DNA of 55,068 nt from NCBI RefSeq assembly GCF_001194135.2, contig NC_068982.1, positions 103,844,976 through 103,900,043 of the forward strand, read 5' to 3'. Positions 14,441-55,068 of the stretch are shown piece after piece (positions within the stretch are counted from its first letter, which is position 1; each line of letters opens with the position of its first letter). Source of the DNA: Octopus bimaculoides (lineage: Eukaryota). The position numbers and the translations under genes were made by a program. The notes below the pieces were generated by a model. It did no database searches. It had not been told where the DNA came from and worked only from the letters and a program-made list of their open reading frames with translations.

Positions 14441-14551
14441 TCATGCATCAGCAGCAGCTATTTCTGCAAAACTTGGGCAAGGAACATGTGGTACTTCATA
14501 ATGGATATTTGGTATTATATTGCCATCCTTATCACTTGTAATGTCTGTCGA
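14441..14551 (-). CDS. Terminal coding exon [36 protein letters not shown]
   Basis: Acceptor ttattatttacag, phase 0; only this frame is long. Confidence 0.6.
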   Translation of the reverse strand, partial: STDITSDKDGNIIPNIHYEVPHVPCPSFAEIAAADA

Positions 14552-22527: not shown

Positions 22528-22566
<39 letters not shown>

Positions 22567-34800: not shown

Positions 34801-36197
34801 TGCATGCATGTATGTATGTATAGCATGCATGCATGTATGTATGTATAGCATGCATGCATATGTGTGACTGTTCCCTTTGCTATCTATTGAAACCAAAGAG
34901 AATATATCCACAATAAAAATTACCATTTCTGTGTCTGAGAGGAACTCTTTGAATGGCGTGCCACTTCGGCTTTTCTATAAAATAAACAGAAACAAAAAAA
35001 TTTTAGATTGAAACAACATAGTAAGTCTTACTTTTACTGATCATAGCAAAATACTTTAAAATTTTAATTGCAATAACAATATTTCTATGACAATAAAAGC
35101 TAATGTAAATTAGATTGAAGGATGGAAGTAACAAAGAAATGAATGCAAGTAGGCTGGAAAAAGGAGAGAAGGTATTTGCAATGAATGAGAAAAAGAGAGA
35201 GAGAGAGAGAGCGTTGTAGGTTTTTATCAATGTATATATACGTCATGGGTTCTAGTTTGTTTAACCCATTACCTACCAGTGATCTCATATGAGATCACTT
35301 AAAAATAACAAATTTCGTAATTATCTGTCAATATTTACACATATCTAACCTTTTTGCTATATCTACTAGGTATATTTCTCTGATATTCAAATGAGGTTTG
35401 CTAATTTTTCACCCAATATCTCGCTTATTTCTATTTAAAATGTTATTTCGAAATGTTATTTTGAAATGTTATTTTGATCCTTCCAGCGTGTTTCTAAGGC
35501 TGTCTTATGCTAGAAATCAAAGTTTCATAAAAAAATTCCAGTTAATAGAATTATGGGAGGTAATGGGTTAATCTGATTAGAGGGTTACCTGGGTGGAGAT
35601 AGGGTTCTGGAGGTGGATATTGGTGTCATAATAGAGAACATCCCAGAGGATACCACCAAACACAATAATTATCATACCATACAACTCAACAACACCACCC
35701 TCAACTCCTTATCAAATGATAATCTTAGCACCAACTATAATAACAAACCGAACACCGATTCCTCACTAAATAACAATACCGTCATGAGCTCATCTGGAAT
35801 GCCCCTTACAAATCTATGTAGCTTCAGACATTCAACCTCCTGTCCTTTAGATAACCACTGTCTCACTAAAAACATAGTTTATAAGTGCACAGTATCAACT
35901 AACAACTGTAACTACATTTACATCGGCTCATGTAGCACCACCTTCAAAGTTAGGGTGAGCAATCACTACTCTAGCTTCAAATCCCAAATACAATCTAACA
36001 GGCGCAGGAGTGGTTGTGTGGTAAGTAGCTTGCTTACCAATTACATGGTTCCAGGTTCATTCCCACTGCATGGCAACTTAGGCAGGTGTCTTCTACTATA
36101 GCCTCAGACCAACCAAAGCCTTGTGAGTGGCTTTGCTAGATGAAACTGAAAGAAGCCTGTATATATATATATGTATATATATATGTATATATATATG

Positions 36198-36230
<33 letters not shown>

Positions 36231-39200
36231 ATGTTTGTGTGTTTGTGTTTGTCCCCACAACATCGCTTGACAACTGATGGTGGTGTGTTTACATCCTGTA
36301 ACTTAGCAGTTCGGCAAAAGAGACCGATAGAGTAAGTACTAGGCTTCCAAAGAATAAAGGCGGTGCTCCAGCATGGCCGCAGTCAAATGACTGAAACAAG
36401 TAAAAGAGTATATTGTTATCTCAATTTATCAGTAAACTAACGCTTGATTCAACCCCTTACCCTCTCAAATGGTCCATAGTCAACCACACCAAACCTTACA
36501 ATGGATATAACAACAAATGTGACTTCATGGCTATTTTGCAATCCATAGACTGTCTCAATGAACACAGAAGTATATTTACCTGCAAGCATCGGGCACTAAA
36601 TCTATTCTCAAAATACAAGTAATTACAACCCCACCCTGCTCTTGTCTCCCCTTAACTCTCATATATATATATATTTTTTTTCCACTCATCCACCCTCACT
36701 ACCACTTTGTATTAAACCAACAATATCTTTCTCCCCTTTTAATTCTTGGATCATCAATTACAAAATTCTCTCCATATTTTTACTTATTTTCCAAAATATT
36801 TTTCTTTCCTTTTATTTCAGCTCCCCCTCCTACACCTTCCATCCATAAGCTTACAGATACATATACCTACATACACTTCCATCACTTCATACATTTTTAA
36901 AAATTGGTTTTCTATCATTCCCCTGCTAGTTTCTGCCTTTGATTACCAACAACCTGCTAGTCCGGCTTAAGTTCCTCACCCTACCTTGCTTTATTCATAC
37001 ACACTTTCTTTCTCCTGCCAAAATATTTTCTCACCCTCTCCCTTCCAATTTATCTTTCCTTCAAGTACCAATCCCACTACTAAATTCTATGATTCAGCCA
37101 AAACTGCTATATTATCTACTACTAGTCAACTGACCTAGCCCAATTTCTCCTTCCTCTCATCATCGTCATTTAACGTCCGCTTTCCATGCTAGCATGGGTT
37201 GGACGATTGACTGAGGACTGGTGGACCAGAAGGCGACACCAGGCTCCAGTCTGATTTGGCAGAGTTTCTACAGCTGGATGCCCTTCCTAACGCCAACCAC
37301 TCCGAGAGTGTAGTGGGTGCTTTTATGTGCCACCGGCACGAGGGCCAGTCAGGCAGGTACTGATGACGGCCACGCTCGAAATGGTGTGTCACCTCTCACT
37401 CCCTTATATTTTTTCGTCTTTCTTCCCTTCTTCTAATACTTATTTCTCCCTACATTTATATACCCCTCTCATACTGTACCCTTCACACATTCTGATAGAA
37501 TCTTCTTTGCATCAACATGTACCTCATTGTGACAATGTAACCTTTAATCTAATCAAGATATCCTTGGCCTGAAGAGTAGCTAGCGGAATATACCCCGCTT
37601 GGATTTTACCACTTCTGAGGTTCCACTTGCCATGAAGCATATGTAGCCCAGATTTTTTCTACTCCATTCCATAAATCTTATATTCTTTTTTGCACACTCA
37701 ACAACCCTCGTTGCCTACTGTGGAATATAAAATAACTTTTACTGCTCATTGTTCTTCGATAACGAAAAATAATCTGCAACTTTCCCTCTCAATAAAACAC
37801 TATTGTTCCTAAATGTTGTTTCTTTATATTTACTATGGATTGCTTGAAGCTAACTTTCTTCCTACGCCTTGATCCCTGGATCTTGCATTTATATTTTTGA
37901 GCAGCATCGATTTTTATCTATTTTTCCGTCAAGGGCTTATATGCCCCATTATTAGACTATTTTCTTTAGTCATTGTGCGGTGATCACTTATAAGATTTAA
38001 GCTTATAAAATACTATTTTTATTATTTACAGAATTGTAAAAATCAACGCTGCTTTAAAAAACCTTCACAGTAAAAGCACATGAAAGTTTGTTTACAAATA
38101 CAACACTATGAACTAATCATAGTTCTTAAATCTGACGGAGTGAAGCAGGTTGGTATGCTAGTGTAATGGTAGCATTCTTGTCACGAAAACAAAGTGGTGC
38201 GGGTTTGTGTCCCGCACATATAAGAAAACCTATTTTTATCCATCGAGGGCTTATACACCCCATTATTATACTATTTTCTTTAGTCATTGTGTGGTGATTA
38301 CTTATAAGCTTTAAGCTTATAAAATACTATTATTATTATTTACATACATGCATATATATATATATAAAGAAGAGGAAGTTTTTTTTCTCTGAGTATATTC
38401 AATGATTTAAAATTATGCATAGCTTAAATCACTTTTAAACATTTATATGAAATGATAAATGATTTGAATATCATAAAATAACTGTCTGTGTGTATTTATG
38501 TGTATCTATATATTTGTGTGTGTGTGTATGTGAGAGAGAGAGAGTATGTGTATGTGTGTGTGTGTGTGTGCATGCATGCAGGTGTGTGTGTGTGTGTGTA
38601 TTTGTGTGTGTTTGTGTGTGTATGTGTGTGTGTGAGCGTATGTGTGTGTGTGTGTGAGTATTGGTGTATTCATTGAAACAACCAGGTCATTAGACTGCAA
38701 TAATTACCATGTCAGTGTCTGAGAGGAACTCCCAGGAATCTTTGCTGCCTTGGTGATATGGTTGCTATGAAACAAATTAAAAGCAAAAAATATCTGATTA
38801 TTTTAAAATAGCAAATATATTTTATGATTTCAAATTGCACAGAATTTCAATTACTTTAAAAATTTACTTGAAATAGTTTGAATTCAATAAAATGTGTGTG
38901 TGTTTTATGTGTGCATATGTGAATATGTTTGTGTAATGTGCATGTGTGTGTGTGTGTGTGTGTGTATGTGTGTGTGTGTGTACATGCATGTGAGGTGGTG
39001 CTGAAAAGTTCCTGGCTTTAAGTAACAGTAAATACAAGAGGATCAATTACGATTTTATTCAACATATTCCCCTCTCAGATTCACACTCTTATTACAGCGG
39101 TCCTTCAGTTTTTCTAAGCCCTGTAAAAGAACTCAGATTGCTGGATCTCCAGCCAGGCCTTTCATGATATTCTTAAAGCCAGTAACTTTTCAGTACCTTG

Positions 39201-42200
39201 TCATACATACACACACACATGCACATATATAAAGATGTATGCATGTGTGTGTGTAAGTATGGAAGTATGTGTGTTTATGTGTGTGTCTATATGTTTGTAT
39301 GTGGAGGCGCAATGGATTTTACCACTTCTGAGGTTCCACTTGCCATGAAGCATATGTAGCCCAGATTTTTTCTACTCCATTCCATAAATCTTATATTCTT
39401 TTTTGCACACTCAACAACCCTCGTTGCCTACTGTGGNNNNNNNNNNNNNNNNNNNNNNNNNNNNNNNNNNNNNNNNNNNNNNNNNNNNNNNNNNNNNNNN
39501 NNNNNNNNNNNNNNNNNNNNNNNNNNNNNNNNNNNNNNNNNNNNNNNNNNNNNNNNNNNNNAATAAAACACTATTTGTATCCAGTGGTTAGGGCAGCGGA
39601 CTCGCAGTCATAGGATCGCGGTTTCGATTTCCAGACCGGGCCTTGTGAGTGTTTATTGAGCGAAAACACCTAAAGCTCCATGAGGCTCCGGCAGGGGATG
39701 GTGGCGAACCCTGCTGTACTCTTTCACCACAACTTTCTCTCACTCTTTCTTCCTGTTTCTGTTGTACCTGTAATTCAAAGGGTCAGCCTTGTCACACTGT
39801 GTCACGCTGAATATCCCTGAGAACTACGTTAAGGGTACACGTGTCTGTGGAGTGCTCAGCCACTTGCTCGTTAATTTCACGAGCAGGCTGTTCCGTTGAT
39901 CGGATCAACTGGAACCCTTGACGTCGTAAGCGACAGAGTGCCAACTATATGTTTGTGTGTATAATGAATGAAAATTGCATCCAAATGTGTTCATTAGCAG
40001 ATATACTCATCCCTGCACCACTTAAAGTTTAATAGGAATAAGAGCAAGTAATAAAGGAATAAATAATGTCTGGTCATTGAGCGACCAATGGTTCAGATCC
40101 ATGAAGACCACAGCTTCATGGACGACTCCTCAGACTCTTGTCTGGAGACAAATTTTACTCTTCATCTCTTGGAGGTGGAAAGTTATGATTATTGGTAAAA
40201 TGGTAATCAGAGAATAAAAGGTCTGGCGATATTCTCTGATGACCATTTGACCAATGACTGTAACAACTTTCCACCTCCAAGAGGTGAAGAGTAAAATTTG
40301 TGTTTGGACTAGAATCATCCACGAGGCTGCAGCCTTCATGAATGCGAAACCATTGATCACTCTATGATCAGACTTTAACTTCATTGCTTTAATACTTAAC
40401 TGCTCTATACTTTAGAGTGTGTTTCTTATTCAGTTATATGATACATTGACAAAATATATATATATATACATACGAACAGCCATGCTACATGGCAATGAAA
40501 TATGGGCTGTGACTGCTGCGGACATGTGTAACCTTGCAAGGAATGAAGCCAGTATGCTCCAATGGATGAGTAATGTCAGTGTGCATACTCGACAGAGTGT
40601 AAGTACCTTGAGAGAAAAGTTGAACCTAAGAAGCATCAGTTGTGGTGTGCAAGAGAGACAATTGCGCTGGTATGGTCACATGGCAAGAATGGATGAGGAT
40701 AGCTGTGTGAAAAAGTGCCACACCCTAGCGGTTGAGGGAACCTGTGGAAGGGGCAGACCCAGGAAGACCTGGGATGAGGTAGTGAAGCCTGACCTCCGAA
40801 CATTAGGCCTCACCAAAGCAATGACTTCTGACCGAGACCTTCGGAAATATGCTGTGCGTGAGAAGACCCGGCAAGCCAAGTGAGACCAAAATCCAAGGCC
40901 TCTGCCAGGGATGTAGCCAACCCACTTATTCTATATGTGATGGTGTATTAATGTATGGTCAGAGGGTGGTCATACCACAGACATTACAGAAGAGAATGCA
41001 TGCTAAGAGTCCCATGTGGTACACCCAGGCATCTCTAGAATGAAAGCGTTGATGTGAAGTTTTGTATACTAGTCAAGTATGGACAGGGAAGTTGAAAACC
41101 TGGTAAAAGGCTGCAGAATATGCATGCTGGTAGCGAAACTACCAACTACAAAATATGAGCCTTGGCTGGAAGTGGAAATACCATGGTCTCGATTGCATAT
41201 TGATTTTGCAGGCTGAATAAATGGATATTATTACTTTATAGTAGTGGACAGCTATGCAAAATGACCTGAGGTTGTGAGGTGTAAACGACCAACCTCATAT
41301 ACGGTAGTAAACTCTTTACATAAGCTGTTTGCAAGATTTGGTGCACCGGATATAATTGCCTCTGATAACAGAACACAGTTTGTATCCTGTGAGTTTAAAA
41401 GATTTTGCAAGATGTTAATGTTAGAACATAAAATTATAGCACTGTATCACCCAAGATTGAATGGAAAAGCTGATCGATTTATGGACACTTTTAAGAGAGC
41501 TTTGGATGAGGTCATAATCCAACAGTTCTTAAGGGTATACAGGGTAACTCCAAACCCAAATGCACCAGAAGGAAGTTCACCAGCAGAATTAATGTTTGCC
41601 AGAACGGTGAAGTTAGTATTTGATAAGCTTTTACCAGTGAAGAAAATAACATGTGCAAGTAAAGACATGCCAAAATTCTTTAGAATCGGAGTTAAGATAT
41701 ATGTAAAAATGTACAAAAATGGCAAGCAATACTGGGAAAAAGGAAAAATTGTAACATATGTAGGAAGAATGATGTATGGTGTAAGAAGAAGAACTGGAAT
41801 GGAAAAGAGACATAGAAATCAGCTTAAGGAAAGAGTCATACAAAAGGAACCAACAAGAGTAGAAATACTGATGGACTGGCTATATGACACTTTTCAGGTT
41901 CCGACACTGTTACAGGAAGTTGAAACCACACATACAAGGAAAAGGAAGAATAGTAAATTCCTAAAAGTAGACTTTAAAAAGAAAAGATATTGAGTATATA
42001 TAAAAAAAAGGAGGAGGGTGAATAAAGGAAATTGATTGTTAAATAAAATAATTAAAAGGTGAGACGTTGTATAGTGAAACTGTATACCCCTTCCCAATAA
42101 AAAGTGGTAGGAGTCACCCATTATAAATAGACCAGTAGCTGGTTTTCAAGAGAGGATCAAGAGTTGAAAGTCAACAGTTCTAGTCAGTGTCTTGTGGAGT

Positions 42201-45200
42201 TATCAGTGATAGTAAGACAGAAGAAGTTAGTGTATTACTATTCCGGTATAAAGAGATACAACAGTATCCGATGACTAGTAACTATTGTGGCTACTAGTAT
42301 AAAACAGCAACTACAATACAACGACAGTCACACATCTCACCTGTGGGAGGAACCCACTTTACAACAGTTTTTAAAAAATTTATTTGTATTAAATCTTAAC
42401 TACAAACTATGATACAAATAAATTAGCTATACATCCTCAACTATCCATTTTCTTACCTTATATATATATATATATGCACACATACACACATTCACAGACA
42501 CACTCATGCATACATGCACACACACACACGCATGCACACATGCACACACAATGCTTTCCAGTTAAGATAATTACCTCTTCGGCAGAAGTAGTGTGCTCTC
42601 TGGAACTTCTAGAACTTTTTTTCTATATAATAGAAAAAAATTCTGTTTGTATTAACATAAAAAGTATATATCATGAAAACAAATTATGCAACATAAAAGT
42701 TACTTAAAATCATTTACTTATGATGTCTTGACTTTGTTTAAATAAGGATGAGTGATATACATACAAATACAAACAGACACACACATATATACATCTACAA
42801 ATTTCAATGGGTTTTTGTACTGAAGTTGTGTGTTTACACAAATAATAAACCGGAGTATTCTTCTCAATGGGTAATTATTACTGTTCACAGCGGTGAACAT
42901 AGGAACAATGAATATAACTACACCAATATGAATAATGCCATGTTAGACAAGGTTGCTGAAAAAAAGCATTTCAATATAAATATACCATGATAACCAAAGG
43001 TACAGAATCAGGAGCAATTCAAATTACCAGAATGCAATTTCAGTTATTCAGGATAACCCATACAGGAATACAACCATTCAAGTCATGTTTCCTTAATGAA
43101 TGTTTTCTAAAAACATACGTGTACAGAGCTAAAATAACTTCCACATATGGTATCGAAAAGAATTACATAGGAATTATGGAGTACAAGTTTAAAACCAGGA
43201 GTACACAACATATTCACACTTTCACATTCCGATTTAAAAATGATTCCACTTTTTTCCTTTAATGCAACCTAAAACTGGATATTGTATATTGTTGAGATTA
43301 CAACTTAAGTCTGACCAAGAAATTAAACTGATGGAACCTCTCAAGCACTAGCTGTAGCTGCCTAAATAATATAGCCTCCACAACTCTCTCAATAATAAGT
43401 CTTAGAAATATCCCACTATCCCAATAAGCTGAATGCAGTTGTAGAAATGTAATAAACTGATATCTCAATGGAAAATGTCTACCAATGGTCTTAATATATG
43501 AATGATATCAAAATAGTAGATAGCATAGGAATGACATACACTGGACTAGCAATTAACCCTTTTAGAATCAGGTAAGCATGGCACACATATTCTTTTAAAT
43601 ACAGAGAGAGAATCGAGTCAACATCAATGTTACAATATATCTGGAAGGTCAAATTTGAAGACCACCAAATTAATAAAATATATTATTGTTAAAAAACTTA
43701 GGTTATGCTCAAATAGAAGTAAGAAAGCAACATTTTGTATGGTATAAAAACATTGTACATTAATAACTATAGATAACACATTAGCAAGAAAAGATATGAC
43801 ATTTTTACTATATATACTGATAATGACAATATCTTAAAAAAGAATTTGAAATAGAGCGTGAATAAGAGGGGTTATTTCCATCAAATTTTTTATGTAAATC
43901 TGAAACTTAAAACCCAAGATCCTGACATCAACTGTAAACTGCTACAGAAAGAGTGATATTGGTTGGCTCAGCTTGAGAAGGGAGGAAGGAGAAAAAGGCT
44001 TGAGATCAATGCAAGCAGCCTTTAAATGTCATATAGTATTTCTCACTTAGCACCAGCTAAACAACAGTAGCAAAAATAAATACATAAACTTAGTGCTAAA
44101 AAGTGAAGAGAGAAAAATCCTACATATCAGCAGTGAGCTCCTCTGAAAGTAATCTCTTTCTTATTTCTTTATTGCCCACAAGGGACTAAACATAGAGGGG
44201 ACAAACAAGGACAGACAAAGGGATCAAGTCGATTGCATCGACCCCAGTGCATTACTGGTACTTAATTTATCGACCCCGAAAGGATGAAAGGCAAAGTCAA
44301 CCTCAGTGGAATTTGAACTCAGAACGTAATGACAGATGAAATACTGCTAAGCATTTCGCCCGGAGTGCTAACGTTTCTGCCAGCTCGCCGCCTCTGAAAG
44401 TAATCTCTTTCTGATGGATACAAACCCAGAATAGCAAGGCTATCATACCTCAAAGAAGACCTGGATGTGAAATTCTCAACATACCAATAAAAGACTATGT
44501 TTTCCAAAGTATGTTTTCCAAAAAGAGTATGTTTTCCAAAAAGAGTATGTTTTCCAAAAAGAGTATGTTTTCCAAAGACTTGAAGAGCACATTAATATCG
44601 ACATGAAGTGTAGCCTCTCTTGGATTCATGACACTCCAAAGGCTATGCATTTGCAATCTAAGAATAGGAGTTTAATACAAAATACTTAGCAGACAAAAGA
44701 GACAGTGAAGCCCTTGAAACCCTAAAATGCGATTGAAAATGTAAATTATGTCATATTTCTGTGGAAGACATCACACAGAGGAGGCAGCAGCTCAAACATG
44801 TCTTCAACTTACTATCTCTATATGCAACATGACATCACTAAAACAATTTACAATGTCATTTGCAAAAAAGAGACTGACCTGAAATAAATATAGAGAATCA
44901 TCCTGTTATTGAATACATACACAAACATAAATATATGGAATAATGTTGGAACATTCATTGCTATTGAAAATCTGCCAAATGTAAACATAACCAGCCAGAT
45001 ATTGTTGTTTGGGAAAGAAAAGAAAAATGCATGTGATGTCATGAAAGTCAGATGCCCTACTGATGTAAACCTTCAAAAATCAAAAAGAAAGAGAATAACT
45101 TCAGACAACTAATTTGAAACCTCTAGCTTCTATATCCTGATTTTAAATTCACATTTACACCAATAATAATTGGTACACTTGCTTTTGTGAGTAAATGCAC

Positions 45201-48200
45201 ATGATACTCTGGATAAGTTATGGTTTTCAGATAAAGAAATCAACCAGTTAATTCACTCATTACAAATATAGTTGTGAGTGGAACAGTAAAAGTAGGCAAG
45301 AATTTCCTGGAGTTAAAAACGTAACATTGTTTTTGTTATCTACATTCCTACAATGAGGCTTTGTATCTTTGTTAGAAACCTGTTCCTTTCTCAGATGAAG
45401 ATTTCATATACTTAAAAACAGAACATACATACATTCATACATATATACATAAATACACACATATATGCATGCATATACACACATATACACATACATAAAC
45501 ACACAAAAATAGATGTACATACATTCATACATAGATACATGTATGTATGTATATAAAATCTCTCCTCCAAACAGGTGATTGTGTTTAATATAGTTACCAA
45601 GAAAGAAGTGACTGTGAGGTATTGGGAACGTTCTCGCTTTGGTCTCTATAAGAAAAAAAGAAACAAAATCCATCTCTGATTGTGTTAACATAATTAATAC
45701 ATTTCACAATTTCAAATGATACAGCATAAAAAGATTAATATAAAACTTCTAAAAACGTTTTGAGTTTGTTGAAATCAATCTTGATTGAATGCATGTTATC
45801 ATTTAGTGGTAAAATGCAAAACACTGTTTTATAACAAGGATTACTCTTAGCATTGCAATAAATATATTTTCACTCTACGTTTACAATGAGTACTTTTTCT
45901 TGTTACTAATTCATATATACATCGATTCCTATCGATTGTTTTTTTTATTTTATTATGCAGAGTTTGTGCGCATTTCGAGTCTGAAATGTTTTAATAAGCA
46001 TAAATAATTACAAATGAATATTTTAGGGGTAAGTTATTTTCTTCAAGTAGCTTCTCAGTTTTAACTACGCAACGGAACTAACTGAACCCTATTAATATTT
46101 ACATATTGTGATTTATATGCTTTATAACTTCTACAGCAAATAGTGCAATATGGTGAAGCTTCACAATAATAAAACTATACTCTAGGAACAAGATGAGTTT
46201 GTCATCTGATGACAGTTTGCCTCAAGGTGAGCATCAAAATTAGAGTTATGATGAGTTATCAATTACTGACTGGTGAGTACAGATATGAAAGGAAAAAAAC
46301 CAAGGAAAGTGATCCAAATGGAAGGAAGCTATGGAAAAGGTCTAATAACAAAAATGTGAAAAGGAATGGAGAAGGCAGATCTGAAGACACTGAATCATAC
46401 AAAGATAAACAACAGCCATGACAAATGAAAGTGGAAGTGCATTGCTTAGTGGTTAGGGTACTGGACTCATGATTGTATGATTGTGGCTTCGATTCCTGGA
46501 CTGGGATGCATTGTATTCTTAAGCAAAACACTTCATTTCCTTTTTCTCCAGTCCACTCAGCTGGCTAAAATGAGTAATCCTGTCACAGATGGGTGTAACA
46601 TCCAGGGAGGAATATATGCACCGGAGGGAGTGTGAAACTGGGCCTATACCCCTTTCACAATAATGTAAACTAACTGTGACAAACGGAAAGGTGAATACTG
46701 GAAAAAGTATATCCAATGCACATACACATAGAAAAAACTGATGCGAAAATGATGATAGTGATGATGATGATGATGATAATGATGATGACAGTCATGATGA
46801 TGATGATGTTGAAAATGATGATGATGTTTGGAAGTACTGAAGGTAGAAAAGGTAGCCAATATAGTGTTTATCTATTATTTTGATGCTAAAGACGGAAAAT
46901 GTCAACTGAACTGAAGCTTTAAACATTAAATAGAGCTACAGTAAAACAGTAGTTGATATTGTTAAGGCATATATAATGTTTACAGAGAACAGATTTAGAT
47001 TATGCAGATTCTGGATCACAATCAAATCAACTTCACTGTCACAGTACTTCTGGTGGCTCAACAGTTGGTAGAAATAAATGAGTAGAAATACTGAGGGATT
47101 GGCTATATGACACTTTTCAGGTTCCGACACTGTTACAAGAAGTTGAAACCACACATACAAGGAAAAGGAAGAATAGTAAATTCCTAAAAGTAGACTTTAA
47201 GAAGAAAAGATGTTGAGTATATAAAAAAAAAAAGGAGGAGGGTGAATAAAGGAAATTGATTGTTAAATAAAATAATTAAAAGGTGAGATGTTGTATAGTG
47301 AAATTGTATACCCCTTCCCAATAAAAAGTGGTAGGAGTCACCCATTATAAATAGACCAGTAGCTGGTTTTCAAGAGAGGATCAAGAGCTGAAGAGTTGAA
47401 AGTCGACAGTTCTAGTCAGTGTCTTGTAGAGTTATCAGTGATAGTAAGACAGAAGTTAGTATATTACTATTCCGGTATAAAGAGATACAACAGTATCCGA
47501 TGACTAGTAACTATTGTGGCTACTAGTATAAAACAGCAACTATAATACAACGACAGTCACACATCTCACCAGTGGGAGGAACACACTTTACAACAGTTTA
47601 AAAAAAATTTATTTGTATTTAAATCTTAACTACAAACTATGATACAAATAAATTAGCTATACATCCTCAACTCTCCATCTTATTACCTTATATATATANN
47701 NNNNNNNNNNNNNNNNNNNNNNNNNNNNNNNNNNNNNNNNNNNNNNNNNNNNNNNNNNNNNNNNNNNNNNNNNNNNNNNNNNNNNNNNNNNNNNNNNNNN
47801 NNNNNNNNNNNNNNNNNNNNNNNNNNNNNNNNNNNNNNNNNNNNNNNNNNNNNNNNNNNNNNNNNNNNNNNNNNNNNNNNNNNNNNNNNNNNNNNNNNNN
47901 NNNNNNNNNNTGTATTAACATAAAAAGTATATATCATGAAAACAAATTATGCAACATAAAAGTTACTTAAAAACATTTACTTATGATGTCTTGACTTTGT
48001 TTAAATAAGGATTAGTGATATACATACAAATACAAACAGACACACACATATATACATCTACAAATTTCAATGGGTTTTTGTACTGAAGTTGTGTGTTTAC
48101 ACAAATAATAAACCGGAGTATTCTTCTCAATAGGTAATTATTACTGTTCACAGTGGTGAACATAGCAACAATGAATATAAATCCACCAATATGAATAATG

Positions 48201-48948
48201 CCATGTTAGACAAGGTTGCTGAAAAAAAGCATTTCAATATAAATATACTACGATAACCAAAGGTACGGTACCAGGAGCAATTCAAATTACCAGAATGCAA
48301 TTCCAGTTATTCAGAAAAAATAGAAACAAAATCCATAATGTAAACTAACTGTGACAAATGACAATCAAATCAACTTCACTGTCACAGTACTTCTGGTGGC
48401 TCAACAGTTGGTAAATAAACATACAATAGAATATTGCTAGTAAAGATAGACCACAGGATTCAAATAGTAACATTTATATCAGAGAAAAATCCCCACAAAA
48501 TAATAACATAGAACAGAACTGAACTTGTTATGACAGCCACAGAAAAAAAGAGTTCCTCTTCAATGAATATGAAATATAATGTGATTTCAAGGTTATGGTG
48601 ATAAGTCTTTCCCTTGTAAAAATTTTGATATATTTTTATGAGAAATATGATAACCTTGTTAATATGTTAGATTTAGCAGTTTTATATCTATCACAATACA
48701 TGCATACATATAATACATATATACAAATATATATATGCATGTGTATTTGTGTGGATATTTGCTTCTTAAACCTAGATCAACATGTCCAAGGTAATTACCT
48801 TTACAAATTCTGTTGGCTCATCTTTGCGAGATTTAGGAGTTGGGCTCCTCTGCTGTAAAATTAAATATATAAAAACAGAAACATTATTGCATTAAATTAA
48901 TAAATTGCAGTACAAATCACTTCTAATTTGTTAAAAGAACTCATAAAT

Positions 48949-48998
<50 letters not shown>

Positions 48999-51427
48999 TA
49001 TAATGCAAAAGTCATAGTAGCAACAATGTTTAGTCTCAATATTAGTAAATATAAAACTATACTCTAGGAACAAGATGAGTGTATCATCTGATGAGAGTTT
49101 GCCTCAGGGTGAGCATCAAAATTAGAGTTAAGATGAGTTATCAATTACTGACCGGTGAGTACAGATATGATAGGAGAATAAAAACCAAGACAAGAGATCC
49201 AAATGGAAGGAAGCTATGGAAGAGGTCCCTTGTCAAAAATGTGAACAGAAATGGAGAAGGCAGATCTGAAGACACTGAATCATACAAAGATAAACAACAG
49301 CCATGACAAATGAAAGTGGAAGTGCATTGCTTAGTGGTTAGGATACTGGACTCATGATTGTATGATTGTGGCTTCGATTCCTGGACTGGGATACATTGTA
49401 TTCTTAAGCAAAACACTTCATTTCCTTTTGCTCCAGTCCATTCAGCTGGTTAAAATAAGTAATCCTGTCACAGATGGGTGTAACATCCAGGGAGGAATAT
49501 ATGCACCAGAGAGACTGTGAAACTGGGCCTATGCCCCTTCCACAGTAATGTAAACTAATCGTGACAAATGGAAAGGTGAATACTGGAAAAAGTATATCCA
49601 ATGTACATACACATAGAAAAAACTGATGCGAAAATGATGATAGTGATGATGATGATGATGATAATGACAACGAAAATGATGATGATGTTTGGAAATACTG
49701 GAGGTAGAAAGGGTAGTCAATATAGTGTTTATCTATTATTTTGATGCTAAAGATTCACTCTATCACTACTTTGAACTTTCTACATGTAGTGGTGTGTCTG
49801 CATTGTTTCTCATTGGAATCATCTTTTAATATATATTTATTCATATGTATTTACACCGATAGATTTTTGTATTTATAATACTTGTTGCAGATAAACATTT
49901 TCCTACTAGCCATAGATATTATAAGATATTAAAATGGAATAAATTAATAGTTAAGTGTAGTTTCTTCAAAGGCCTACAGCTAAGAACACTTCAAAGCAAT
50001 CACTTTAGTGCACCAGCAAAAGAACATCATATTCAATGTCTGTATAAACGGTGTACAGAAAAAAAAAAAAGAAAAAAAATTAATGCTTATGTTACAAAAA
50101 TATGTTTAAGGCTCACTAGGTGCACATTAAAAAGAAAGAATACCATCATACATTAATTTCTAGGAATTGGGGGTTATTCAATGTGGTCCATTGAATAATG
50201 CCATGACTAGTTCTGTTTTCTGATATTAAATGACTTGATTATGGAATTATGGTGTATGTATGTTTATGATTTCATGGTCTGCCAAGTCCAAGAATTTATG
50301 GAGTGTAGAGTAAACTGACAAATAATATCCAGTTTTTTTTTGAAGACGTATATCAGTTTGCACTTGCGTTAGATGATGGTTTTGTGTTTCTTTAATGTAA
50401 CATACAGTTTGCATAGAGTGAAGTATTTTACATAGTTTTCAGCATTTAATTGTGATGCTAGTATTTTCACTTTGTTGTTTATTATAATTGATTCTGTTTT
50501 TAAGTGTGCAAGCTCTCTAATTCATCGAAGCTTTTTTTTTTTCTGAAGCCAAATTTATTGTCCATGAGTATGTTTGTACACTTTATACAAAAGATGTCAA
50601 TAACTTTATTCCTTTTATTAAATATTTAGTTTTCTCTAGCAGAGACTTTATAGAAAGCTTTTATTATGTAATTGTTTATTATTCAGGGAGTAATTGAGAG
50701 AATATTACCCCCACATAGTACAAAACAATGTAAAGGTTAGCTATATGTGCCTAGATAGTATAGCCTAAAAAATCCTCCACTAAAACCAGTGCCTCACAAA
50801 GACCACTAACTTCTTCAGTCTGGACACTACTGCAAAAATACAACAAAACGGCCTTTTAATGGAAAATGCCAATTGAACTGTAGCTTTAAACATTATATAG
50901 AGCTACAGTAAAACAGTAGCTGATATTGTTATGGCATATATAATGTTTACAGAGAACAGATTTAAATTCTGCAGATTTGGGGTCACAATCAAATCAACTT
51001 CACTGTCACAGTACTTCTGGCAGCACAACAGTAAATCAATTAACATACAATGGGATATTGTTAGTAAAGATAGACCACAGGATTCAGATAGTAACAGTTA
51101 TACCAGAGAAAAATCCCCATAAAATAATAACATATAAAGTACATCAAAAAGAACTGAACTTGTTATGAAATCCGCAGAAAAAAAAAAAAAAAAGAGTTCC
51201 TCTTCAGCAAATACGAAATATAATGTGTTTTCAATGTTATAATGATAAGTCTTTCATTGTAAAAATTTTGATATACTTTTACAAGGAATATGATGGCCCT
51301 GTTAATATGTTAAATTTAGCAGTTTTATCTATCATGATACATACATACACATACACACACACATACATACATACATACATACATACATACATGCATACAT
51401 AAATACATACATACACACATACATACA

Positions 51428-51461
<34 letters not shown>

Positions 51462-51615
51462 CATACATATATTACACTTATACAAATATATATACATGTG
51501 TACTTGAGAAGATGTTTGCTTCCTAATCCCAGGTCAACATGTCCAAAGTAATTACCATTTCAAATTCTGTTGGTTCATCTTTGCTAGGTCTAGGAGTTGG
51601 AGTTGGGCTCCTTTG
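14441..51615 (-). CDS. Unidentified multi-exon gene, about 430 aa in window: low-complexity repeat N-terminus, CxxC motifs, coiled-coil C-terminal half; 5' end probably beyond window
   Basis: Twenty GT-AG exons join in phase without stops: 51615-51556, 48852-48799, 45645-45598, 42622-42575, 38764-38708, 34974-34924, 34578-34524, 33769-33718, 32523-32460 (or to 32371 with a frameshift), 32254-32220, 31899-31818, 31285-31241, 30879-30838, 27446-27433, 27297-27189, 27029-26934, 21491-21439, 21215-21138, 20139-20052, 18800-18750. Terminal exon 14551-14441 (TGA). Manual model; no homolog recognised. Confidence 0.65.
15658..16044 (+). mobile_element. SINE family B with 12-bp TSD
   Basis: TSD actattggtgga at 15646-15657 and 16045-16056; (CAA)n tail. 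Confidence 0.9.
16664..17052 (-). mobile_element. SINE family B with 9-bp TSD
   Basis: TSD cttcctggg at 16655-16663 and 17053-17061. Confidence 0.9.
17359..18559 (+). mobile_element. Decayed full-length mariner (DD34D) transposon
   Basis: TIRs (g)gt(a/c)agctg(a/g)aaagttca(t/c)a(a/g)gctgacta; terminal TA. Broken transposase with [22 protein letters not shown] and [16 protein letters not shown]...[14 protein letters not shown]. Confidence 0.9.
18750..18800 (-). CDS. Exon [17 protein letters not shown] (phase 0-0)
   Basis: Long pyrimidine tract ending ttccag; donor gtaagt. Confidence 0.65.
20052..20139 (-). CDS. Exon (S)[29 protein letters not shown] (phase 2-0)
   Basis: Branch-like ctaac, pyrimidine tract, tag acceptor; donor gtaagt; single open frame. 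Confidence 0.75.
21138..21215 (-). CDS. Exon (N)[25 protein letters not shown] (phase 2-2)
   Basis: Acceptor ctctttttcag; donor AG|gtatac. Confidence 0.75.
21439..21491 (-). CDS. Exon [17 protein letters not shown] (phase 0-2)
   Basis: Acceptor gtctcag; donor gtagtt; bridges the phases of its neighbours exactly. Confidence 0.65.
21609..21994 (+). mobile_element. SINE family B
   Basis: Full head, body and tail; inserted in (TATG)n. Confidence 0.9.
22040..22343 (+). mobile_element. Internally deleted mariner remnant
   Basis: [25 protein letters not shown] followed directly by the C-terminal [18 protein letters not shown]; right TIR ...gggtacccccttgTA. Confidence 0.7.
22363..22727 (-). mobile_element. 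SINE family A
   Basis: High similarity to other family-A copies; small internal deletion. Confidence 0.9.
23004..23388 (-). mobile_element. SINE family A
   Basis: High similarity to other family-A copies. Confidence 0.9.
23870..24259 (-). mobile_element. SINE family B with 11-bp TSD
   Basis: TSD tgaccatttat at 23859-23869 and 24260-24270. Confidence 0.9.
24610..24935. repeat. Polypurine (GA/GGGA)-rich low-complexity tract
   Basis: About 320 bp almost exclusively G/A. Confidence 0.9.
26165..26615 (+). mobile_element. 3' remnant of a CRE-like non-LTR retrotransposon (restriction-like endonuclease domain)
   Basis: [20 protein letters not shown]...[18 protein letters not shown] ... YLFEPEAFE ... 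[10 protein letters not shown], with stops. Confidence 0.7.
26934..27029 (-). CDS. Exon [32 protein letters not shown] (phase 0-0, coiled-coil-like)
   Basis: Acceptor tttcgtttacag; donor AAG|gtattt; only one frame is open. Confidence 0.75.
27189..27297 (-). CDS. Exon (F)[36 protein letters not shown] (phase 2-0)
   Basis: Acceptor tattatag; donor CAG|gtatca. Confidence 0.6.
27433..27446 (-). CDS. 14-nt microexon YGIT(F) (phase 0-2)
   Basis: Acceptor tatatttag; donor gtaagc; needed to keep the frame. Confidence 0.5.
27479..28269 (-). mobile_element. RTE-clade LINE 3' end (RT C-terminus, 3' UTR, (GAT)n tail)
   Basis: [37 protein letters not shown], followed by a UTR homologous to 53700-54260. 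Confidence 0.85.
28900..29470 (+). mobile_element. CR1/L2-like LINE 3' remnant
   Basis: [12 protein letters not shown]...GRHC...[10 protein letters not shown]...[16 protein letters not shown]...RAALSNSL. Confidence 0.75.
29581..29652. repeat. 25-bp tandem repeat, about 2.8 copies
   Basis: Unit acagattttgtca(c/t)ttgggctcatc. Confidence 0.85.
30838..30879 (-). CDS. Exon [14 protein letters not shown] (phase 0-0)
   Basis: Acceptor cttttacttcag; donor CAG|gtatgg. Confidence 0.65.
31241..31285 (-). CDS. Exon [15 protein letters not shown] (phase 0-0)
   Basis: Acceptor cattttag; donor gtaatg. Confidence 0.55.
31818..31899 (-). CDS. Exon (C)[27 protein letters not shown] (phase 2-0)
   Basis: Strong tract tttctttcccttctctgtgatgaccag; donor AAG|gtaaaa. 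Confidence 0.65.
32220..32254 (-). CDS. Exon [11 protein letters not shown](C) (phase 0-2)
   Basis: Acceptor catcttttcag; donor gtaatt; single open frame. Confidence 0.6.
32371..32523 (-). CDS. Exon (I)[21 protein letters not shown]..., 3' boundary ambiguous
   Basis: Acceptor ttcttatttttcag. In-frame weak donor gtttct after 32460, or strong gtgagt after 32371 that needs a +1-nt correction. Confidence 0.55.
33718..33769 (-). CDS. Exon (I)[16 protein letters not shown](I) (phase 1-2)
   Basis: Acceptor ctaacaatattttcag; donor gtaggt. An alternative in-frame acceptor gives a first base at 33874. Confidence 0.6.
34524..34578 (-). CDS. Exon [18 protein letters not shown] (phase 0-1)
   Basis: Acceptor tattaatag; donor gtaacc; single open frame. 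Confidence 0.6.
34595..34862. repeat. Compound (TGAA)/(TATG)/(CATG) microsatellite filling an intron
   Basis: Direct inspection. Confidence 0.95.
34924..34974 (-). CDS. Repeat exon [17 protein letters not shown] (phase 0-0)
   Basis: Acceptor tttattttatag; donor ATG|gtaatt; paralogous to 38708-38764. Confidence 0.75.
36001..36410 (+). mobile_element. SINE family A inserted in the PLE endonuclease
   Basis: Complete copy; the PLE frame resumes after it. Confidence 0.9.
37158..37390 (-). mobile_element. RTE 3' UTR fragment with (GAT) tail
   Basis: Homologous to 27479-27790 and 54020-54260. Confidence 0.85.
37563..37651 (+). ncRNA. Degenerate type I hammerhead ribozyme motif in the PLE 3' region
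   Basis: Stem I cttggc/gcccag (5 of 6 pairs), CTGAAGA (37569-75), long stem II, GAAG (37634-37; consensus GAAA), palindromic CATATG, TA cleavage site (37644-45). Confidence 0.5.
38152..38222 (+). pseudogene. Degenerate tRNA-like sequence / SINE head
   Basis: A-box-like TAGTGTAATGG, D stem, perfect T stem gcggg/cccgc with a 7-nt loop; anticodon loop and acceptor stem decayed. Confidence 0.4.
38708..38764 (-). CDS. Repeat exon [19 protein letters not shown] (phase 0-0)
   Basis: Acceptor tttgtttcatag; donor ATG|gtaatt; shares gagttcctctcagacac with 34924-34974. Confidence 0.75.
38989..39205. mobile_element. Mariner-type MITE, about 215 bp
   Basis: TIRs gtgctgaaaagttcctggctttaag / cttaaagccagtaacttttcagtac; ends in TA. 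Confidence 0.7.
39303..39944 (+). mobile_element. SINE family B interrupted in its A-box by a PLE-derived segment and an N gap
   Basis: ggaggcgcaatgg at 39303-39315; resumes ccagtggttagg at 39581. Confidence 0.8.
40066..40375. mobile_element. Foldback/MITE: about 310-bp near-complete palindrome flanked by TA
   Basis: Arms pair over nearly the whole length (37-bp block with 1 mismatch, 26-bp block with 2 mismatches); 13-nt central loop. Confidence 0.75.
40465..40925 (+). mobile_element. RTE-clade LINE 3' fragment
   Basis: AMLHGNEIW...[10 protein letters not shown]...[14 protein letters not shown]...DRDL. Confidence 0.85.
40927..42366 (+). mobile_element. Gypsy LTR retrotransposon 3' part: decayed integrase, PPT and 3' LTR
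   Basis: HPGISRMK...CRIC (HHCC), [29 protein letters not shown], with stops. PPT aaaaggtgaga; LTR 42065-42366 bounded by (T/C)GTTGTA...TACAACA. Confidence 0.9.
42575..42622 (-). CDS. Repeat-type exon [16 protein letters not shown] (phase 0-0)
   Basis: Acceptor tttttttctattatatag; donor GAG|gtaatt. Confidence 0.65.
43080..43700 (+). mobile_element. Two tandem decayed Penelope-like GIY-YIG fragments
   Basis: [33 protein letters not shown] (43080-43260) and LNGKCL...TYTGLA..FRIR*AWH..SFK...[12 protein letters not shown] (43440-43700). Confidence 0.65.
44162..44394 (-). mobile_element. tRNA-derived SINE family D with long TSD
   Basis: TSD tgaaagtaatctctttct (18 bp; up to 22 bp counting cctc) at 44140-44161 and 44391-44412. 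Degraded relatives near 5060, 5230, 9700, 15420, 16080, 25660 and 25900. Confidence 0.85.
44496..44577. repeat. 18-bp minisatellite, about 5 units
   Basis: Unit tatgttttccaaaaagag. Confidence 0.9.
45598..45645 (-). CDS. Repeat-type exon [16 protein letters not shown] (phase 0-0)
   Basis: Acceptor tttcttttttcttatag; donor TTG|gtaact. All frames are open; frame chosen by chain phase. Confidence 0.55.
46169..46891 (+). repeat. Local duplication B, copy 1 (copy 2 at 49051-49753)
   Basis: Collinear, highly similar blocks. Confidence 0.9.
47102..48313 (+). repeat. Local duplication A, copy of 41877-43053 (Gypsy tail, LTR 47289-47595, exon position hidden in N gap)
   Basis: Shared sequence extends on both sides of the LTR, so this is a segmental copy rather than a second insertion. 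Confidence 0.9.
48799..48852 (-). CDS. Repeat exon [18 protein letters not shown] (phase 0-0)
   Basis: Acceptor tttaattttacag; donor AAG|gtaatt; paralog of 51556-51615. Confidence 0.75.
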
Positions 51616-51723
51616 CTGTAAAATTATATAAAATCAGAAATAATAAATTTTTAAAACAAGTTATTTCTAGTTTGTTAAAAGAACTCATGAATGTATACAG
51701 ATACACACACATAAATATATACA

Positions 51724-51771
<48 letters not shown>

Positions 51772-51835
51772 CATGATAAAGGTTAAAATACAAAAGTTAT
51801 AATAGCAACAATGTCTAGTCTCAACATTACAATAA
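50575..51835 (+). repeat. Local duplications C/D (similar to 48355-49045 and 54375-55068), carrying a PLE GIY-YIG remnant
   Basis: PFNGKC...IYRATVK...[11 protein letters not shown]...[10 protein letters not shown]...IQWDIV; collinear with the other copies. Confidence 0.85.
51556..51615 (-). CDS. Repeat exon [20 protein letters not shown] (phase 0-0)
   Basis: Acceptor ataattttacag; donor ATG|gtaatt. Confidence 0.75.
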
Positions 51836-53037
51836 ATACACTGCACATTTACTGTGAGCACATCTCCTCTTGTATGGAAACTAAAGCTTACATATAAACA
51901 TATGCACACAGAGTACATACAGACACACCCACACACATACATTCACATACACATGCATGTGTGCACACACACACATTCACACCCACCCACACACACACAC
52001 TTTGCATAAGAGTCTAAAATGGTCTTCATATAATAATTAATAATTTCATCCACATTTCAGCAACATCATAATCTTATCTTCAATATTAGGTGTTGTTAGT
52101 ACTACTTTTATAGTAAGAAAGGGTAATTTCAATTTTGACTGTTAAATTCGTCATCAATTAGAAGTTTACAAAGCTAACAGTCAAATATTCAAATTTTGGC
52201 AATAACATTTACAAAATTTTACTCTAAAGTGGTAGCAACATATTTCAACGTCTCTTCACTCTGAAGATGAGGCCATGAAGCTCTAGAAAGGAACTGAAAG
52301 GAAATTCTATGAAAATATAAAAAAGAACTTGATAAAAACATGTGCCTCATAAAAAGCACCCATGCTAGTGCCACATAGCACACAAATATTCTGCTGCCAC
52401 GTGAGCTTAAGCAATGATGGAGTCACATAAAAATGTACCTGCACTGGCGCCTTGTAAAAAGCAATCAGTACACTCTATAAAGTGACTGACATTAAGAAGG
52501 GCATCCAGCTATAGAAATCATGCTAAAACAAACAACTGAAGTCTGGTGCAGTTCTTCAGATTGCTAGTTCAAGCCATTCAACACATACCAGCATGGAAAA
52601 TGGATTTTAAATGACTTGTTGAGTTTATTTCTTCAGATTTTCTACAGAAATTATAGTCAGCCGTGATTTTGTTCCAACATTTCTTATCTGAGATGCCTTA
52701 TGTAAACAACAACATTGAGACCAAAGATGAAAATGGGTAATGGGCATATATGAAATATTTCAGTAATTTTTCCTCCTTCATCAGCACCCATCCAACCCAT
52801 AAATCATCCATGAACAAATTGATTAAACAGCCACTAAATATAGCAGTGTAACTTTCACAATATACCAATTTCACAGATTATACAGTCTTACATATTCGTG
52901 GAAGCTGGTGCGTAAATATGAATGACGTATTATTAATGTCATAACAAAATTATTGGTGGCTATATTTTCCATAGGAAATCTGTAGAGATAACTTTAACAA
53001 GTGATGCAAGAGCACTGTTAACACAGCAGAACATAGA

Positions 53038-53262
53038 CTTACTCTTTTACTCTTTTATTTGTTTCAGTCATTTGACTGCGGCCATGTTGGAGCACCGCCT
53101 TTAGTCGAGCAAATCAACCCCGGGACTTATTCTTTGTAAGCCTAGTACTTATTCGATCGGTCTCTTTTGCCGAACCGCTAAGTGACGGAGACATAAACAC
53201 ACCAGCATCGGTTGTCAAGCAATGCTAGGGGAACAAACACACACACACACAAACACACACAC

Positions 53263-53301
<39 letters not shown>

Positions 53302-53460
53302 TACGACGGGCTTCTTTCAGTTTCTGCCTACCAAATCTACTCACAAGGCTTTGGTCGGCCCGAGGCTATAGTAGAAGACACTTGCCCAAGGTTTCACGGA
53401 GTGGGACTGAACCCGGAACCATGTGATTGATAAGCAAGCTACTTACCACACAGCCACTCA
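53038..53460 (-). mobile_element. SINE family A, complete
   Basis: Close to family consensus. Confidence 0.9.
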
Positions 53461-53544
53461 ATTTGTAGTACATCATAGTTGCATAACGAAATATAGTGTC
53501 TCTACATGTCATTAATATGTATGTAAGTATATATATGTATAAGA

Positions 53545-54260
53545 CCTGGGATGAGGTGGTGAAACATGACCTTCAAACATTAGGCTTCATCGAGGCAATG
53601 ACAAGTGACCGGGACCTTTGGAAATATGCAGTGCATGAGAAGACCCCGACAAGCCAAGTGAGACCATAATCCGTGGCCTCTGCCAAAAGTGTAGCTAGCT
53701 CACTTATTCATATCTTTACTTCATTGGACACTAAACTCTGCTGGCGAAGACCTGTTGGGGCAAGTAAAATCGAAATCGAAATCGTAATTGAACCATATTC
53801 AATGACTGGCACCTGTTCCAGTGGAGCACTAACAACACCGTCCGAGCATGATCATTGCCAGAGCAGCTGTCTAGCTTCTGTGCCAGTGGCACGTAAATAG
53901 CACCATTTGAGCGTGATAATTACCAGCGTCGCCTTACTGACAATTGTGCCAGTGGTACATTAGAAAACATTCGAGCGAGGTCATTGCCAGTGCCACTAGA
54001 CTGGCTCCTGTGCAGGTGGCATGTAAAATACACCATTTTGAGCATGGCCATTGCCAGTAGCGCCTTACTGGCCTTCGTGCCGGTGGCACGTAAGAACACC
54101 CACTACATTCTCGGAGTGGTTGGTGTTAGGAAGGCTATCCAGCTGAAGAAACTCTGCCAGATCAGACTGGAGCCTGGTGCAGCCATCCGGTTCACTAGTC
54201 CTCAGTCAAATTGTCCAACCCATGCTAGCATGGAAAGCGGACGTTAAACGATGATGATGA
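53545..54260 (+). mobile_element. RTE-clade LINE 3' end with modular 3' UTR and (GAT)n tail
   Basis: [16 protein letters not shown]...DRDLWKYAV, then the UTR, then gatgatgatgat. Confidence 0.85.
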
Positions 54261-54290
54261 TATATATATATATATATATANNNNNNNNNN

Positions 54291-54340
<50 letters not shown>

Positions 54341-55068
54341 GTCAGGATTTGGATAAGAAATTTTTATTTAGCTCTTTTGTCCTTTATACAAAAGAAGTCA
54401 TCAACTTTATTCCTTTTATTAAATATTTAGCTTTATCCTGCAGACACTTTATATGAAGCTTTCATTATGTAATTGTGTATTATTCAGGGAGTAATTGAGA
54501 GAATACCATCCCCATATAGTACAATACAATGTAAAGGTTAGCTACATGTGCCTAGATAGTACAGCCTCAAAAAAAATCTTCCACTAAAACCAGAGCCTCA
54601 CAAAGATCACTAACTTCTTCAGTCTGGACTCTACTGTAAAAATAAAACAAACTGACCTTTTGATGGAAAATGCCAATTGAACTGTAACTTTAAACATTAT
54701 ATAGAGCTACAATAAAACAGTAGCTGATATTGTTATGGCATATATAATGTTTATAGATAACAGATTTGGATTATGCAGATTCTGGGTCACAATCAAATCA
54801 ACTTCACTGTCACAGTACTTCTGGCAACACAACAGTAAATAAATAAACATACAATGGGATATTGTTGGTAAAGATAGACCACAGGATTCAGATAGTGACA
54901 TTTATACCAGAGAAAAATCACACAAAATATCATATAATACACGAAAAAGAACTGAACTTGTTATGAAATCCGCAGAATAAAAAAGAGTTCCTCTTCAGTG
55001 AATATGAAATATAATGTGTTTTCAATGTTATGATGATAAGTCTTTCCCTTGTAAAAATTTTGATATAA

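Follow-up and report, generated by a model that had tools for sequence, protein, structure and literature searches.

A 55,068-nt stretch of an Octopus bimaculoides chromosome (CM046602.1; hereafter the window) carries, on its minus strand, the repeat-encoding part of an uncharacterised orphan gene, which encodes the predicted protein XP_052834497.1. Taken as a whole, the evidence makes it most probable that a disordered region of this protein grew by duplication of very short exons (mini-exons) together with their introns. The surrounding locus of ~89.6 kb, here called L001 (GCA_001194135.2, CM046602.1:103849416-103939049, reversed), is 100% identical to the window, and a position in L001 equals 94075 minus the window position. 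Coordinates are window positions unless marked L001.

The six candidate exons are all on the window's minus strand. Each is an open reading frame (ORF) bounded by AG and GTAATT (GTAACT in one case), is in phase 0-0 and has a pyrimidine-rich tract upstream; on the plus strand, the donors read as a(a/g)ttac directly before the exon. Five of the six are annotated coding exons of the XP_052834497.1 gene: Q4 (51556-51615, 60 nt, residues 111-130), Q5 (48799-48852, 54 nt, residues 131-148), E10 (42575-42622, 48 nt, residues 149-164), E11 (38708-38764, 57 nt, residues 165-183), and E12 (34924-34974, 51 nt, residues 184-200). The sixth (45598-45645, 48 nt, with GTAACT) has good acceptor and donor signals and is in none of the four models of the gene (P0001-P0004). 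The initial annotation, made from the letters of the window, had described these six phase-0 exons with gtaa(t/c)t donors, and its quoted peptides match ours. Its proposal that all six form one repeat domain holds for the five that are in the annotated protein and is not supported for the exon at 45598.

The exons stand out from their surroundings. Their GC content is 42-49%, compared with 17-41% (mostly 17-33%) in the 200-nt flanks. When we scanned for AG-ORF(42-63 nt)-GTAAYT preceded by a pyrimidine tract, we obtained seven distinct sites on the minus strand and three on the plus strand, versus 2.1 ± 1.5 in simulated sequence. One of the seven (48291-48344, minus strand, with AG-ORF-GTAATT signals) was rejected as a chance ORF, being AT-rich and spanning the junction of a duplicated segment (D', described below). 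When the exon peptides were compared with the whole window by tBLASTn, no additional paralogous exon came to light.

We identified the gene by an exhaustive HMMER search with the six exon peptides concatenated, which returned a single match (E = 3.6e-55, 96% identity); a word-indexed protein search with the same query returned none. The match, XP_052834497.1, is identical to UniProt A0A0L8IHZ1 and is 405 aa long. The other models of the gene are two isoforms of 385 aa and an older model of 571 aa (XP_014790746.1) that includes the entire 405-aa protein. Exact mapping of the protein onto L001 revealed a run of 11 successive mini-exons, each 42-60 nt long and made up of complete codons. In order, these are E2 (42 nt), E3 (48 nt), E4 (57 nt; KSKSSFVKSVTEDIYYTDM), Q1 to Q4 (60 nt each), Q5 (54 nt), E10 (48 nt), E11 (57 nt), and E12 (51 nt), and the annotated protein is their direct in-frame concatenation. 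The mapping also bore out the expectation that more exons of the type whose peptide begins QRSPTP (Q-type exons) would be found to the right of the window, as three lie there, at L001 29556, 27187, and 21514 (~window 64460, 66829, and 72502).

No homologue was found for the repeat region among 1.8 billion representatives, and a search of 5.8 billion clusters with the full protein returned only the protein itself. The 571-aa model matched no Pfam family at E ≤ 1, and a literature search on the three accession numbers yielded no paper. The RefSeq names given to the models (SRRM1, unc-89, HDGFRP2, and "cell surface glycoprotein 1-like") include three different names for three isoforms of this one gene. 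Because the names differ among isoforms of the same gene, we regard them as low-complexity naming artefacts. We rejected SRRM1 because there is no PWI domain, unc-89/obscurin because there are no Ig, Fn3, DH-PH, or kinase domains, and HDGFRP2 because there is no PWWP domain.

In the peptide encoded by each mini-exon, a basic stretch rich in Ser/Thr-Pro precedes an acidic end (...DEPTEFE(T/M), ...EFLSDT(D/E)M, or ...EDIYYTDM). By sequence reading, the 60-nt Q unit contains three S/T-P sites, one T-x-x-E site, and charges of about +3 and -4; Q units would therefore add alternating blocks of charge and potential phosphosites rather than net charge. In a single-sequence AlphaFold2 model, residues 1-207, which include all of the mini-exons, lack secondary structure, with a predicted local distance difference test score (pLDDT) of ~40, while helices occupy residues 208-353 with pLDDT up to 89 (mean of the whole model, 50.9). 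The N-terminal ~200 residues are thus predicted to be disordered, and the C-terminal half to be helical and coiled-coil-like. The highly charged N terminus (MRKDSKRIKKD...; MRKDSKRIKKDVLDT) argues against a signal peptide.

Since the units contain only complete codons and the region is predicted to lack structure, gains and losses of units disturb neither the reading frame nor a fold, and the array can expand, shrink, and be alternatively spliced. In the annotation, the models carry four or five Q exons together, and a single 20-residue Q exon is missing from each of isoforms X2 and X3 (models P0002 and P0003). Since Q1 and Q3 are identical in exon sequence and the last 27 nt are identical in Q1 to Q3, long reads are needed to confirm the skipping of exons in X2 and X3.

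Self-comparison of the window confirmed that kilobase-scale duplications are present, with 76-97% identity. We found every duplication listed in the initial annotation, with ends that agree to within ~20-90 nt. The matching segments are 41857-42468 and 47080-47698 (95%); 42648-43056 and 47911-48319 (96-97%); the intron blocks A and A', at 46169-46892 and 49051-49753 (91%); 48361-48735 and 50985-51377 (82%); 48696-49002 and 51455-51747 (76%); 50581-51275 and 54382-55067 (90%); and 48361-48632 and 54789-55067 (87.5%). The Q5 unit (48361-49002) consists of the exon core and a downstream intron block, E, and is paralogous to 50985-51747 in the Q4 unit and to 54789-55067. The Q4 unit (50581-51747) contains blocks F, B, and E and the exon core, and a third unit (54382-55067), with blocks F'', B'', and E'', is cut by the window end and an assembly gap. 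Read along the minus strand, a Q unit comprises a (TA/TG)n microsatellite, a conserved upstream core of 100-125 nt, the exon, a conserved downstream core of ~60-100 nt, and a (TATG)n microsatellite. Intron blocks E, B, and F come next, except that the Q5 unit lacks F, and some units also have block A.

The units differ in their degree of divergence. Identity is 76-82% between the Q4 and Q5 units, 90% between the Q4 and third units, and 87% over 1.3 kb between Q2 and Q4, and the Q1 and Q3 units are nearly identical. The Q1-Q5 exons themselves are 82-100% identical. As the similarity runs into the introns, in blocks of 0.2-1.3 kb with 76-97% identity, it reflects duplication at the DNA level and not convergence. 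The proposal that a repeat domain was built by exon duplication is therefore supported: the exons belong to one gene, are concatenated in frame, and lie inside duplicated units of intron plus exon.

Other members of the array are more diverged. The exons at 42575 and 45598, first listed as more distant exons beside the paralog sets, are paralogs of each other, as their units are 61.6% identical over 411 nt. The exon-like copy at 45598 would be a pseudo-exon in decay or else a cassette exon that the annotation has missed. Between E11 and E12, 35 of 38 nt agree over the exon end (EFLSDT[D/E]M) plus the donor, and their flanks are ~63% identical.

A short intronic motif also connects the units. 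Allowing one mismatch, TTTGGAYATRTT occurs 13 times in the 89.6-kb locus, and nine of these occurrences follow mini-exon donors: at +9 after the donors of E2, E3, E4, and Q1-Q5 and at +12 after that of E12. These nine are at L001 13021, 13569, 15016, 21582, 27255, 29624, 42528 (window 51536-51547), 45285 (window 48779-48790), and 59163 (window 34901-34912). Because both the match at the E11 and E12 exon ends and the placement of TTTGGAYATRTT support it, we favor descent of most of the array from one ancestral unit of exon plus intron. In old copies, the pattern suggests that the end of the exon, its donor, and an element in the nearby intron are under constraint, and TTTGGAYATRTT, which is kept beside old paralogs whose introns have otherwise decayed, may be a splicing element.

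Several other features accompany the donors. G is absent from position +5 in all of the Q, E4, and E10-E12 donors. A perfect 14-nt palindrome, AAGGTAATTACCTT (48785-48798 plus the exon end), encloses the Q5 donor, and the other Q donors contain an 8-nt palindrome, GTAATTAC. Within the window, the donor of each mini-exon is followed after 25-110 nt by a microsatellite of the TG, TATG, or CATG type (34586-34846, 38515-38656, 42493-42550, 45425-45505, and 51337-51469). The RBFOX-like sequence GCATG is present in eight copies in the microsatellite downstream of E12 and in four copies downstream of E10, compared with a background of 0.4 per 300 nt. As it is enriched only at these two sites, as part of the microsatellite, we rejected it as a general feature of the array.

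One further proposal is speculative, and we consider it rather doubtful: that the array is an expanding, probably copy-number-variable cassette in a lineage-restricted gene, in which recognition of the mini-exons depends on UUUGGAYAURUU at +9 beside a UG/UAUG microsatellite. If so, new units would be splice-competent at birth, and protein length would be set by gene copy number together with regulated skipping.

We compared exon and flank divergence among the five Q copies. Variable columns make up 11 of 60 in the exon, 18 of 103 upstream, and 12 of 62 downstream, and every pairwise Fisher test of exon versus flank gave p > 0.2. Changed codons are mostly nonsynonymous; Q4 and Q5, for example, differ by two synonymous and five nonsynonymous changes. 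Neither exon versus flank divergence nor codon changes in these five copies revealed purifying selection. The initial annotation had read selection into the length differences between paralogs that preserve the frame, and it had named equal divergence of exons and flanks as an observation that would speak against its model; this is the result we obtained for the young copies, for which selection is by that criterion not supported. The length differences (60 versus 54 nt for Q4 and Q5 and 57 versus 51 nt for E11 and E12) are real, but that between Q4 and Q5 is a 6-nt indel attributable to slippage of a CCAACT hexamer and says little about selection.

The neutral-like divergence of the young copies is what would be expected if the mini-exons were an artefact of annotation, in which repetitive intronic DNA had been given a spurious or non-coding gene model whose open frames and splice-like signals yield no protein. 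The lack of a homologue or Pfam domain and the three unrelated low-complexity RefSeq names for isoforms of one gene fit this explanation as well. Nonetheless, we consider it improbable. There are 11 consecutive phase-0 exons with AG/GT signals and pyrimidine tracts and with GC content 15-25 points above that of their flanks, and the exon-end motif and donor have been kept between old paralogs whose flanks have decayed. The scan found seven candidates on one strand where about two were expected. Moreover, the mini-exons run in frame into the predicted helical C-terminal half (pLDDT up to 89), and since exons this short are seldom placed ab initio, transcript alignments are probably behind the models.

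The locus is interrupted by 18 assembly gaps. No exon is interrupted by a gap and, because every exon is in phase 0-0, the frame across the gaps is not at stake. Some gaps may hide additional units. One of 212 N (47699-47910), also present in the chromosome-level assembly, lies inside segment D', and both of its sides are collinear with the corresponding segment D. It replaces 179 nt of D (42469-42647) that comprise the microsatellite, exon 42575, and the acceptor tract. From this collinearity, a second copy of exon 42575 inside the gap, as was initially predicted, is plausible. The window end abuts a gap of 1560 N (L001 37447-39006), and collinearity with the Q4 unit likewise makes it plausible that the Q exon of the third unit falls within it, at ~window 55348-55407 (~280-340 nt past the window end), where the initial annotation had predicted one just past 55068. 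A third gap (L001 32975-36202), at which an upstream block stops and beyond which block E resumes at 37054, past a long interspersed element (LINE) insertion, probably holds another Q exon. The count of Q-type units is thus a minimum, with five assembled and at least two placed in gaps. Two other gaps are intronic: at 39437-39561, where an exact 124-nt copy of 37600-37723 (39313-39436) ends at the left edge, pointing to an assembly artefact, and at 54281-54290, where a repeat copy has its edge.

This exact (100%) repeat is one of a set, 56-124 nt long, that abut gaps: 27592-27647 equals 27658-27713, 37600-37723 equals 39313-39436, and L001 28994-29112 equals L001 29379-29497. These are probably overlapping contig ends or misplaced small contigs, in which case some gaps are spurious, including the 266-N gap upstream of Q3. 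Such repeats and the 18 gaps in 89.6 kb lend some weight to the idea that the duplications themselves are artefacts of a short-read assembly with many gaps, produced for example by haplotypes left uncollapsed or by contigs scaffolded wrongly, as does the near identity of Q1 and Q3, which differ at 0 of 60 positions in the exon and 4 of 161 in the flanks. For the array as a whole we judge this very unlikely, as the copies in the window differ by 3-24% and are further set apart by indels, by their microsatellites, by a 1.2-kb insertion, and by an additional ~1.1 kb present in one unit. Differences of this size probably exceed those expected between alleles, and the encoded peptides differ between copies.

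The source of the 1.2-kb insertion, segment D (41857-43056), runs from the tail of an integrase ORF through a purine tract, ~450 nt that may be a long terminal repeat (LTR), and a microsatellite to exon 42575, with 430 nt of upstream intron beyond it. Segment D' (47080-48319) copies D at 95-97% identity and has been inserted within the Q5 unit, interrupting the B and E blocks. A 64-nt direct repeat flanks it (left copy 47015-47078, right copy 48358-48419; 95%), and this sequence is single and uninterrupted in both sister units. The integrase-core ORF (41274-41993, plus strand), antisense in the intron, belongs to a decayed gypsy-type LTR retrotransposon; its Pfam rve match (E = 7e-7, 29.8 bits) is under the 32.6-bit cut-off. 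D starts 137 nt ahead of the stop codon of this ORF, and those 137 nt are shared by D and D'. Because the tail of the transposable element adjoins unique intron in both copies, D' is one segmental copy made after the element inserted and not the product of two insertions. From the sequence of this locus, we also rejected the possibility that the exons are exonised transposable elements: exon 42575 is ~580 nt past the integrase ORF stop, beyond the purine tract, the ~450 nt, and the microsatellite, and each Q exon is set in a unique core bounded by microsatellites.

Spread of the units as copies of a mobile element carrying an exon-like fragment, by transposition and not by local tandem duplication, is likewise very unlikely: although D' was inserted between copies of a direct repeat and carries part of a retrotransposon, and fragments resembling short interspersed elements (SINEs), LINEs, and mariner are abundant in the window, the units are collinear and in the same orientation within one gene, their blocks are found nowhere in the 89.6-kb locus beyond the array, D' has a truncated ORF tail joined to unique intron without element ends, and its 64-nt flanking repeat much exceeds the usual target-site duplications, which are far shorter.

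We therefore return to growth of the disordered region by duplication of mini-exons with their introns. The array would have grown by repeated DNA-level duplication of units of 2-4 kb, each with one exon and its intron. Duplicates made long ago would now share only the exon 3' end, the GTAATT donor, and the short intronic motif, while the young duplicates (the five assembled QRSPTP-type units and at least two presumably hidden in gaps) are 76-97% identical over kilobases. The copying of D to D' would be a very recent event, in which a 1.2-kb piece with exon 42575 and the retrotransposon tail was inserted 5 kb away. We infer unequal exchange or template switching in the microsatellite- and repeat-rich introns as the mechanism. 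The array would thus display the birth of units (the Q units and D'), a probable death (45598), and alternative inclusion (X2 and X3).

Several observations weigh against this explanation. The evidence that the mini-exons are spliced is the annotation itself, and the RefSeq and UniProt models, being identical, are perhaps not independent. Neither homology search supports conservation of the protein across species, as neither found a homologue. The young exons have diverged no less than the sequence around them, synonymous changes do not outnumber nonsynonymous ones, and non-coding sequence would look alike. Finally, the upstream half of the array contains 10 gaps, and because of these gaps and the exact repeats at gap edges, the order and number of units are uncertain.

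Long runs of short, in-frame, duplicated exons that encode an extended non-globular segment are familiar from the PEVK region of titin and from fibrillar collagen genes with their 54-bp exons, in which copy number varies and exons are skipped. The octopus array differs in having no PPAK/PEVK composition, no Gly-X-Y pattern, units of 14-20 residues, and no detected homology to either.

The closest precedents are genes for disordered proteins assembled from symmetric exons, often by internal tandem duplication, as described in the passages of Schad, Kalmar and Tompa (2013; PMC3632108) on such genes. The octopus gene shares the phase-symmetric exons, predicted disorder, internal tandem duplication, and (in its annotation) alternative inclusion of that pattern. 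The cases in those passages are human genes with known functions, while here we have an orphan cephalopod gene with unusually short units (42-60 nt) and very young copies that still lie in kilobase-scale duplicated introns. The same source describes SCPP (enamel-matrix) genes, such as ameloblastin, as built of class 0,0 exons with tandem exon repeats. Like these, the octopus gene has phase 0,0 exons, encodes a disordered and phosphorylatable protein (both predicted), and repeats one exon type many times. Unlike them, it has no sequence relationship to SCPP genes, no evident signal peptide or SxE-rich secreted architecture, and a coiled-coil-like C-terminal half.

Tandem duplication also gives rise to mutually exclusive exons, for which unannotated duplicates are reported in the part of Ivanov and Pervouchine (2022; PMC9013439) that treats them. 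The octopus exons are similarly adjacent and homologous, and the copy at 45598 or the one placed in the gap would resemble such unannotated duplicates. In contrast to the mutually exclusive exons described there, the octopus copies are included together in the models, lengthening the repeat instead of substituting for one another.

The array shows three of the features by which tandem exon duplication is recognised: neighbouring exons are similar, the similarity spans introns, and the exons are symmetric. It is a clear and well-preserved but ordinary case of a known mode of gene growth, and it leaves existing knowledge of exon duplication unchanged. Its value is as a natural snapshot of the lengthening of a disordered segment, in which duplicates of several ages stand side by side, from kilobase-scale copies of ~97% identity to relics that retain only motifs, and in which a unit that is likely dead and an insertion-type copy with intact junctions are also present. 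It also carries practical warnings. The RefSeq names are artefactual, the exon number is only a minimum since the array overlaps assembly gaps, and expression or proteomic analysis of the locus would encounter multi-mapping between near-identical exons.

Downstream of the array, eight C-terminal coding exons on the minus strand were located approximately, from exact-match seeds: ~31557-31589, 30838-30903, 26934-27032, 23443-23538, 21140-21214, 20052-20141, 18750-18800, and 14441-14551, the last with the stop codon. The older XP_014790746.1 model has in addition an N-terminal extension, encoded upstream of L001 10001. Its 166 residues share with window 35613-36101 (plus strand) the pattern C..C..P.SCPLD..C ... 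Y.G.C...FK.R..NH..SF, which we take to resemble the zinc-finger and GIY-YIG module of Penelope-like elements. The extension, absent from the current RefSeq model, is probably derived from a transposable element.

The window contains other repeats. Interspersed repeats of ~390 bp, SINE-like in appearance, 80-94% identical, and present in both orientations, are at 8243-8571, 15658-16044, 16665-17052, 21607-21995, 23869-24259, and 39581-39945. A second family, of ~400 bp, is at 11655-12045, 22363-22727, 23005-23388, 36008-36410, and 53047-53459. An ARAGORN scan of the whole window found no tRNA gene, and Pfam scans of several window ORFs gave only the sub-threshold integrase match. By motif reading, and with no Pfam match, we recognised a mariner-like transposase fragment and several C-terminal fragments of LINE reverse transcriptases (motif RLRWYGHV.RMDED), at 18151-18492 and 40419-40883 (both plus strand), 27980-28269 (minus strand), and L001 36203-37054. 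One LINE has inserted immediately beyond the microsatellite in a Q unit that probably has its exon hidden in a gap.

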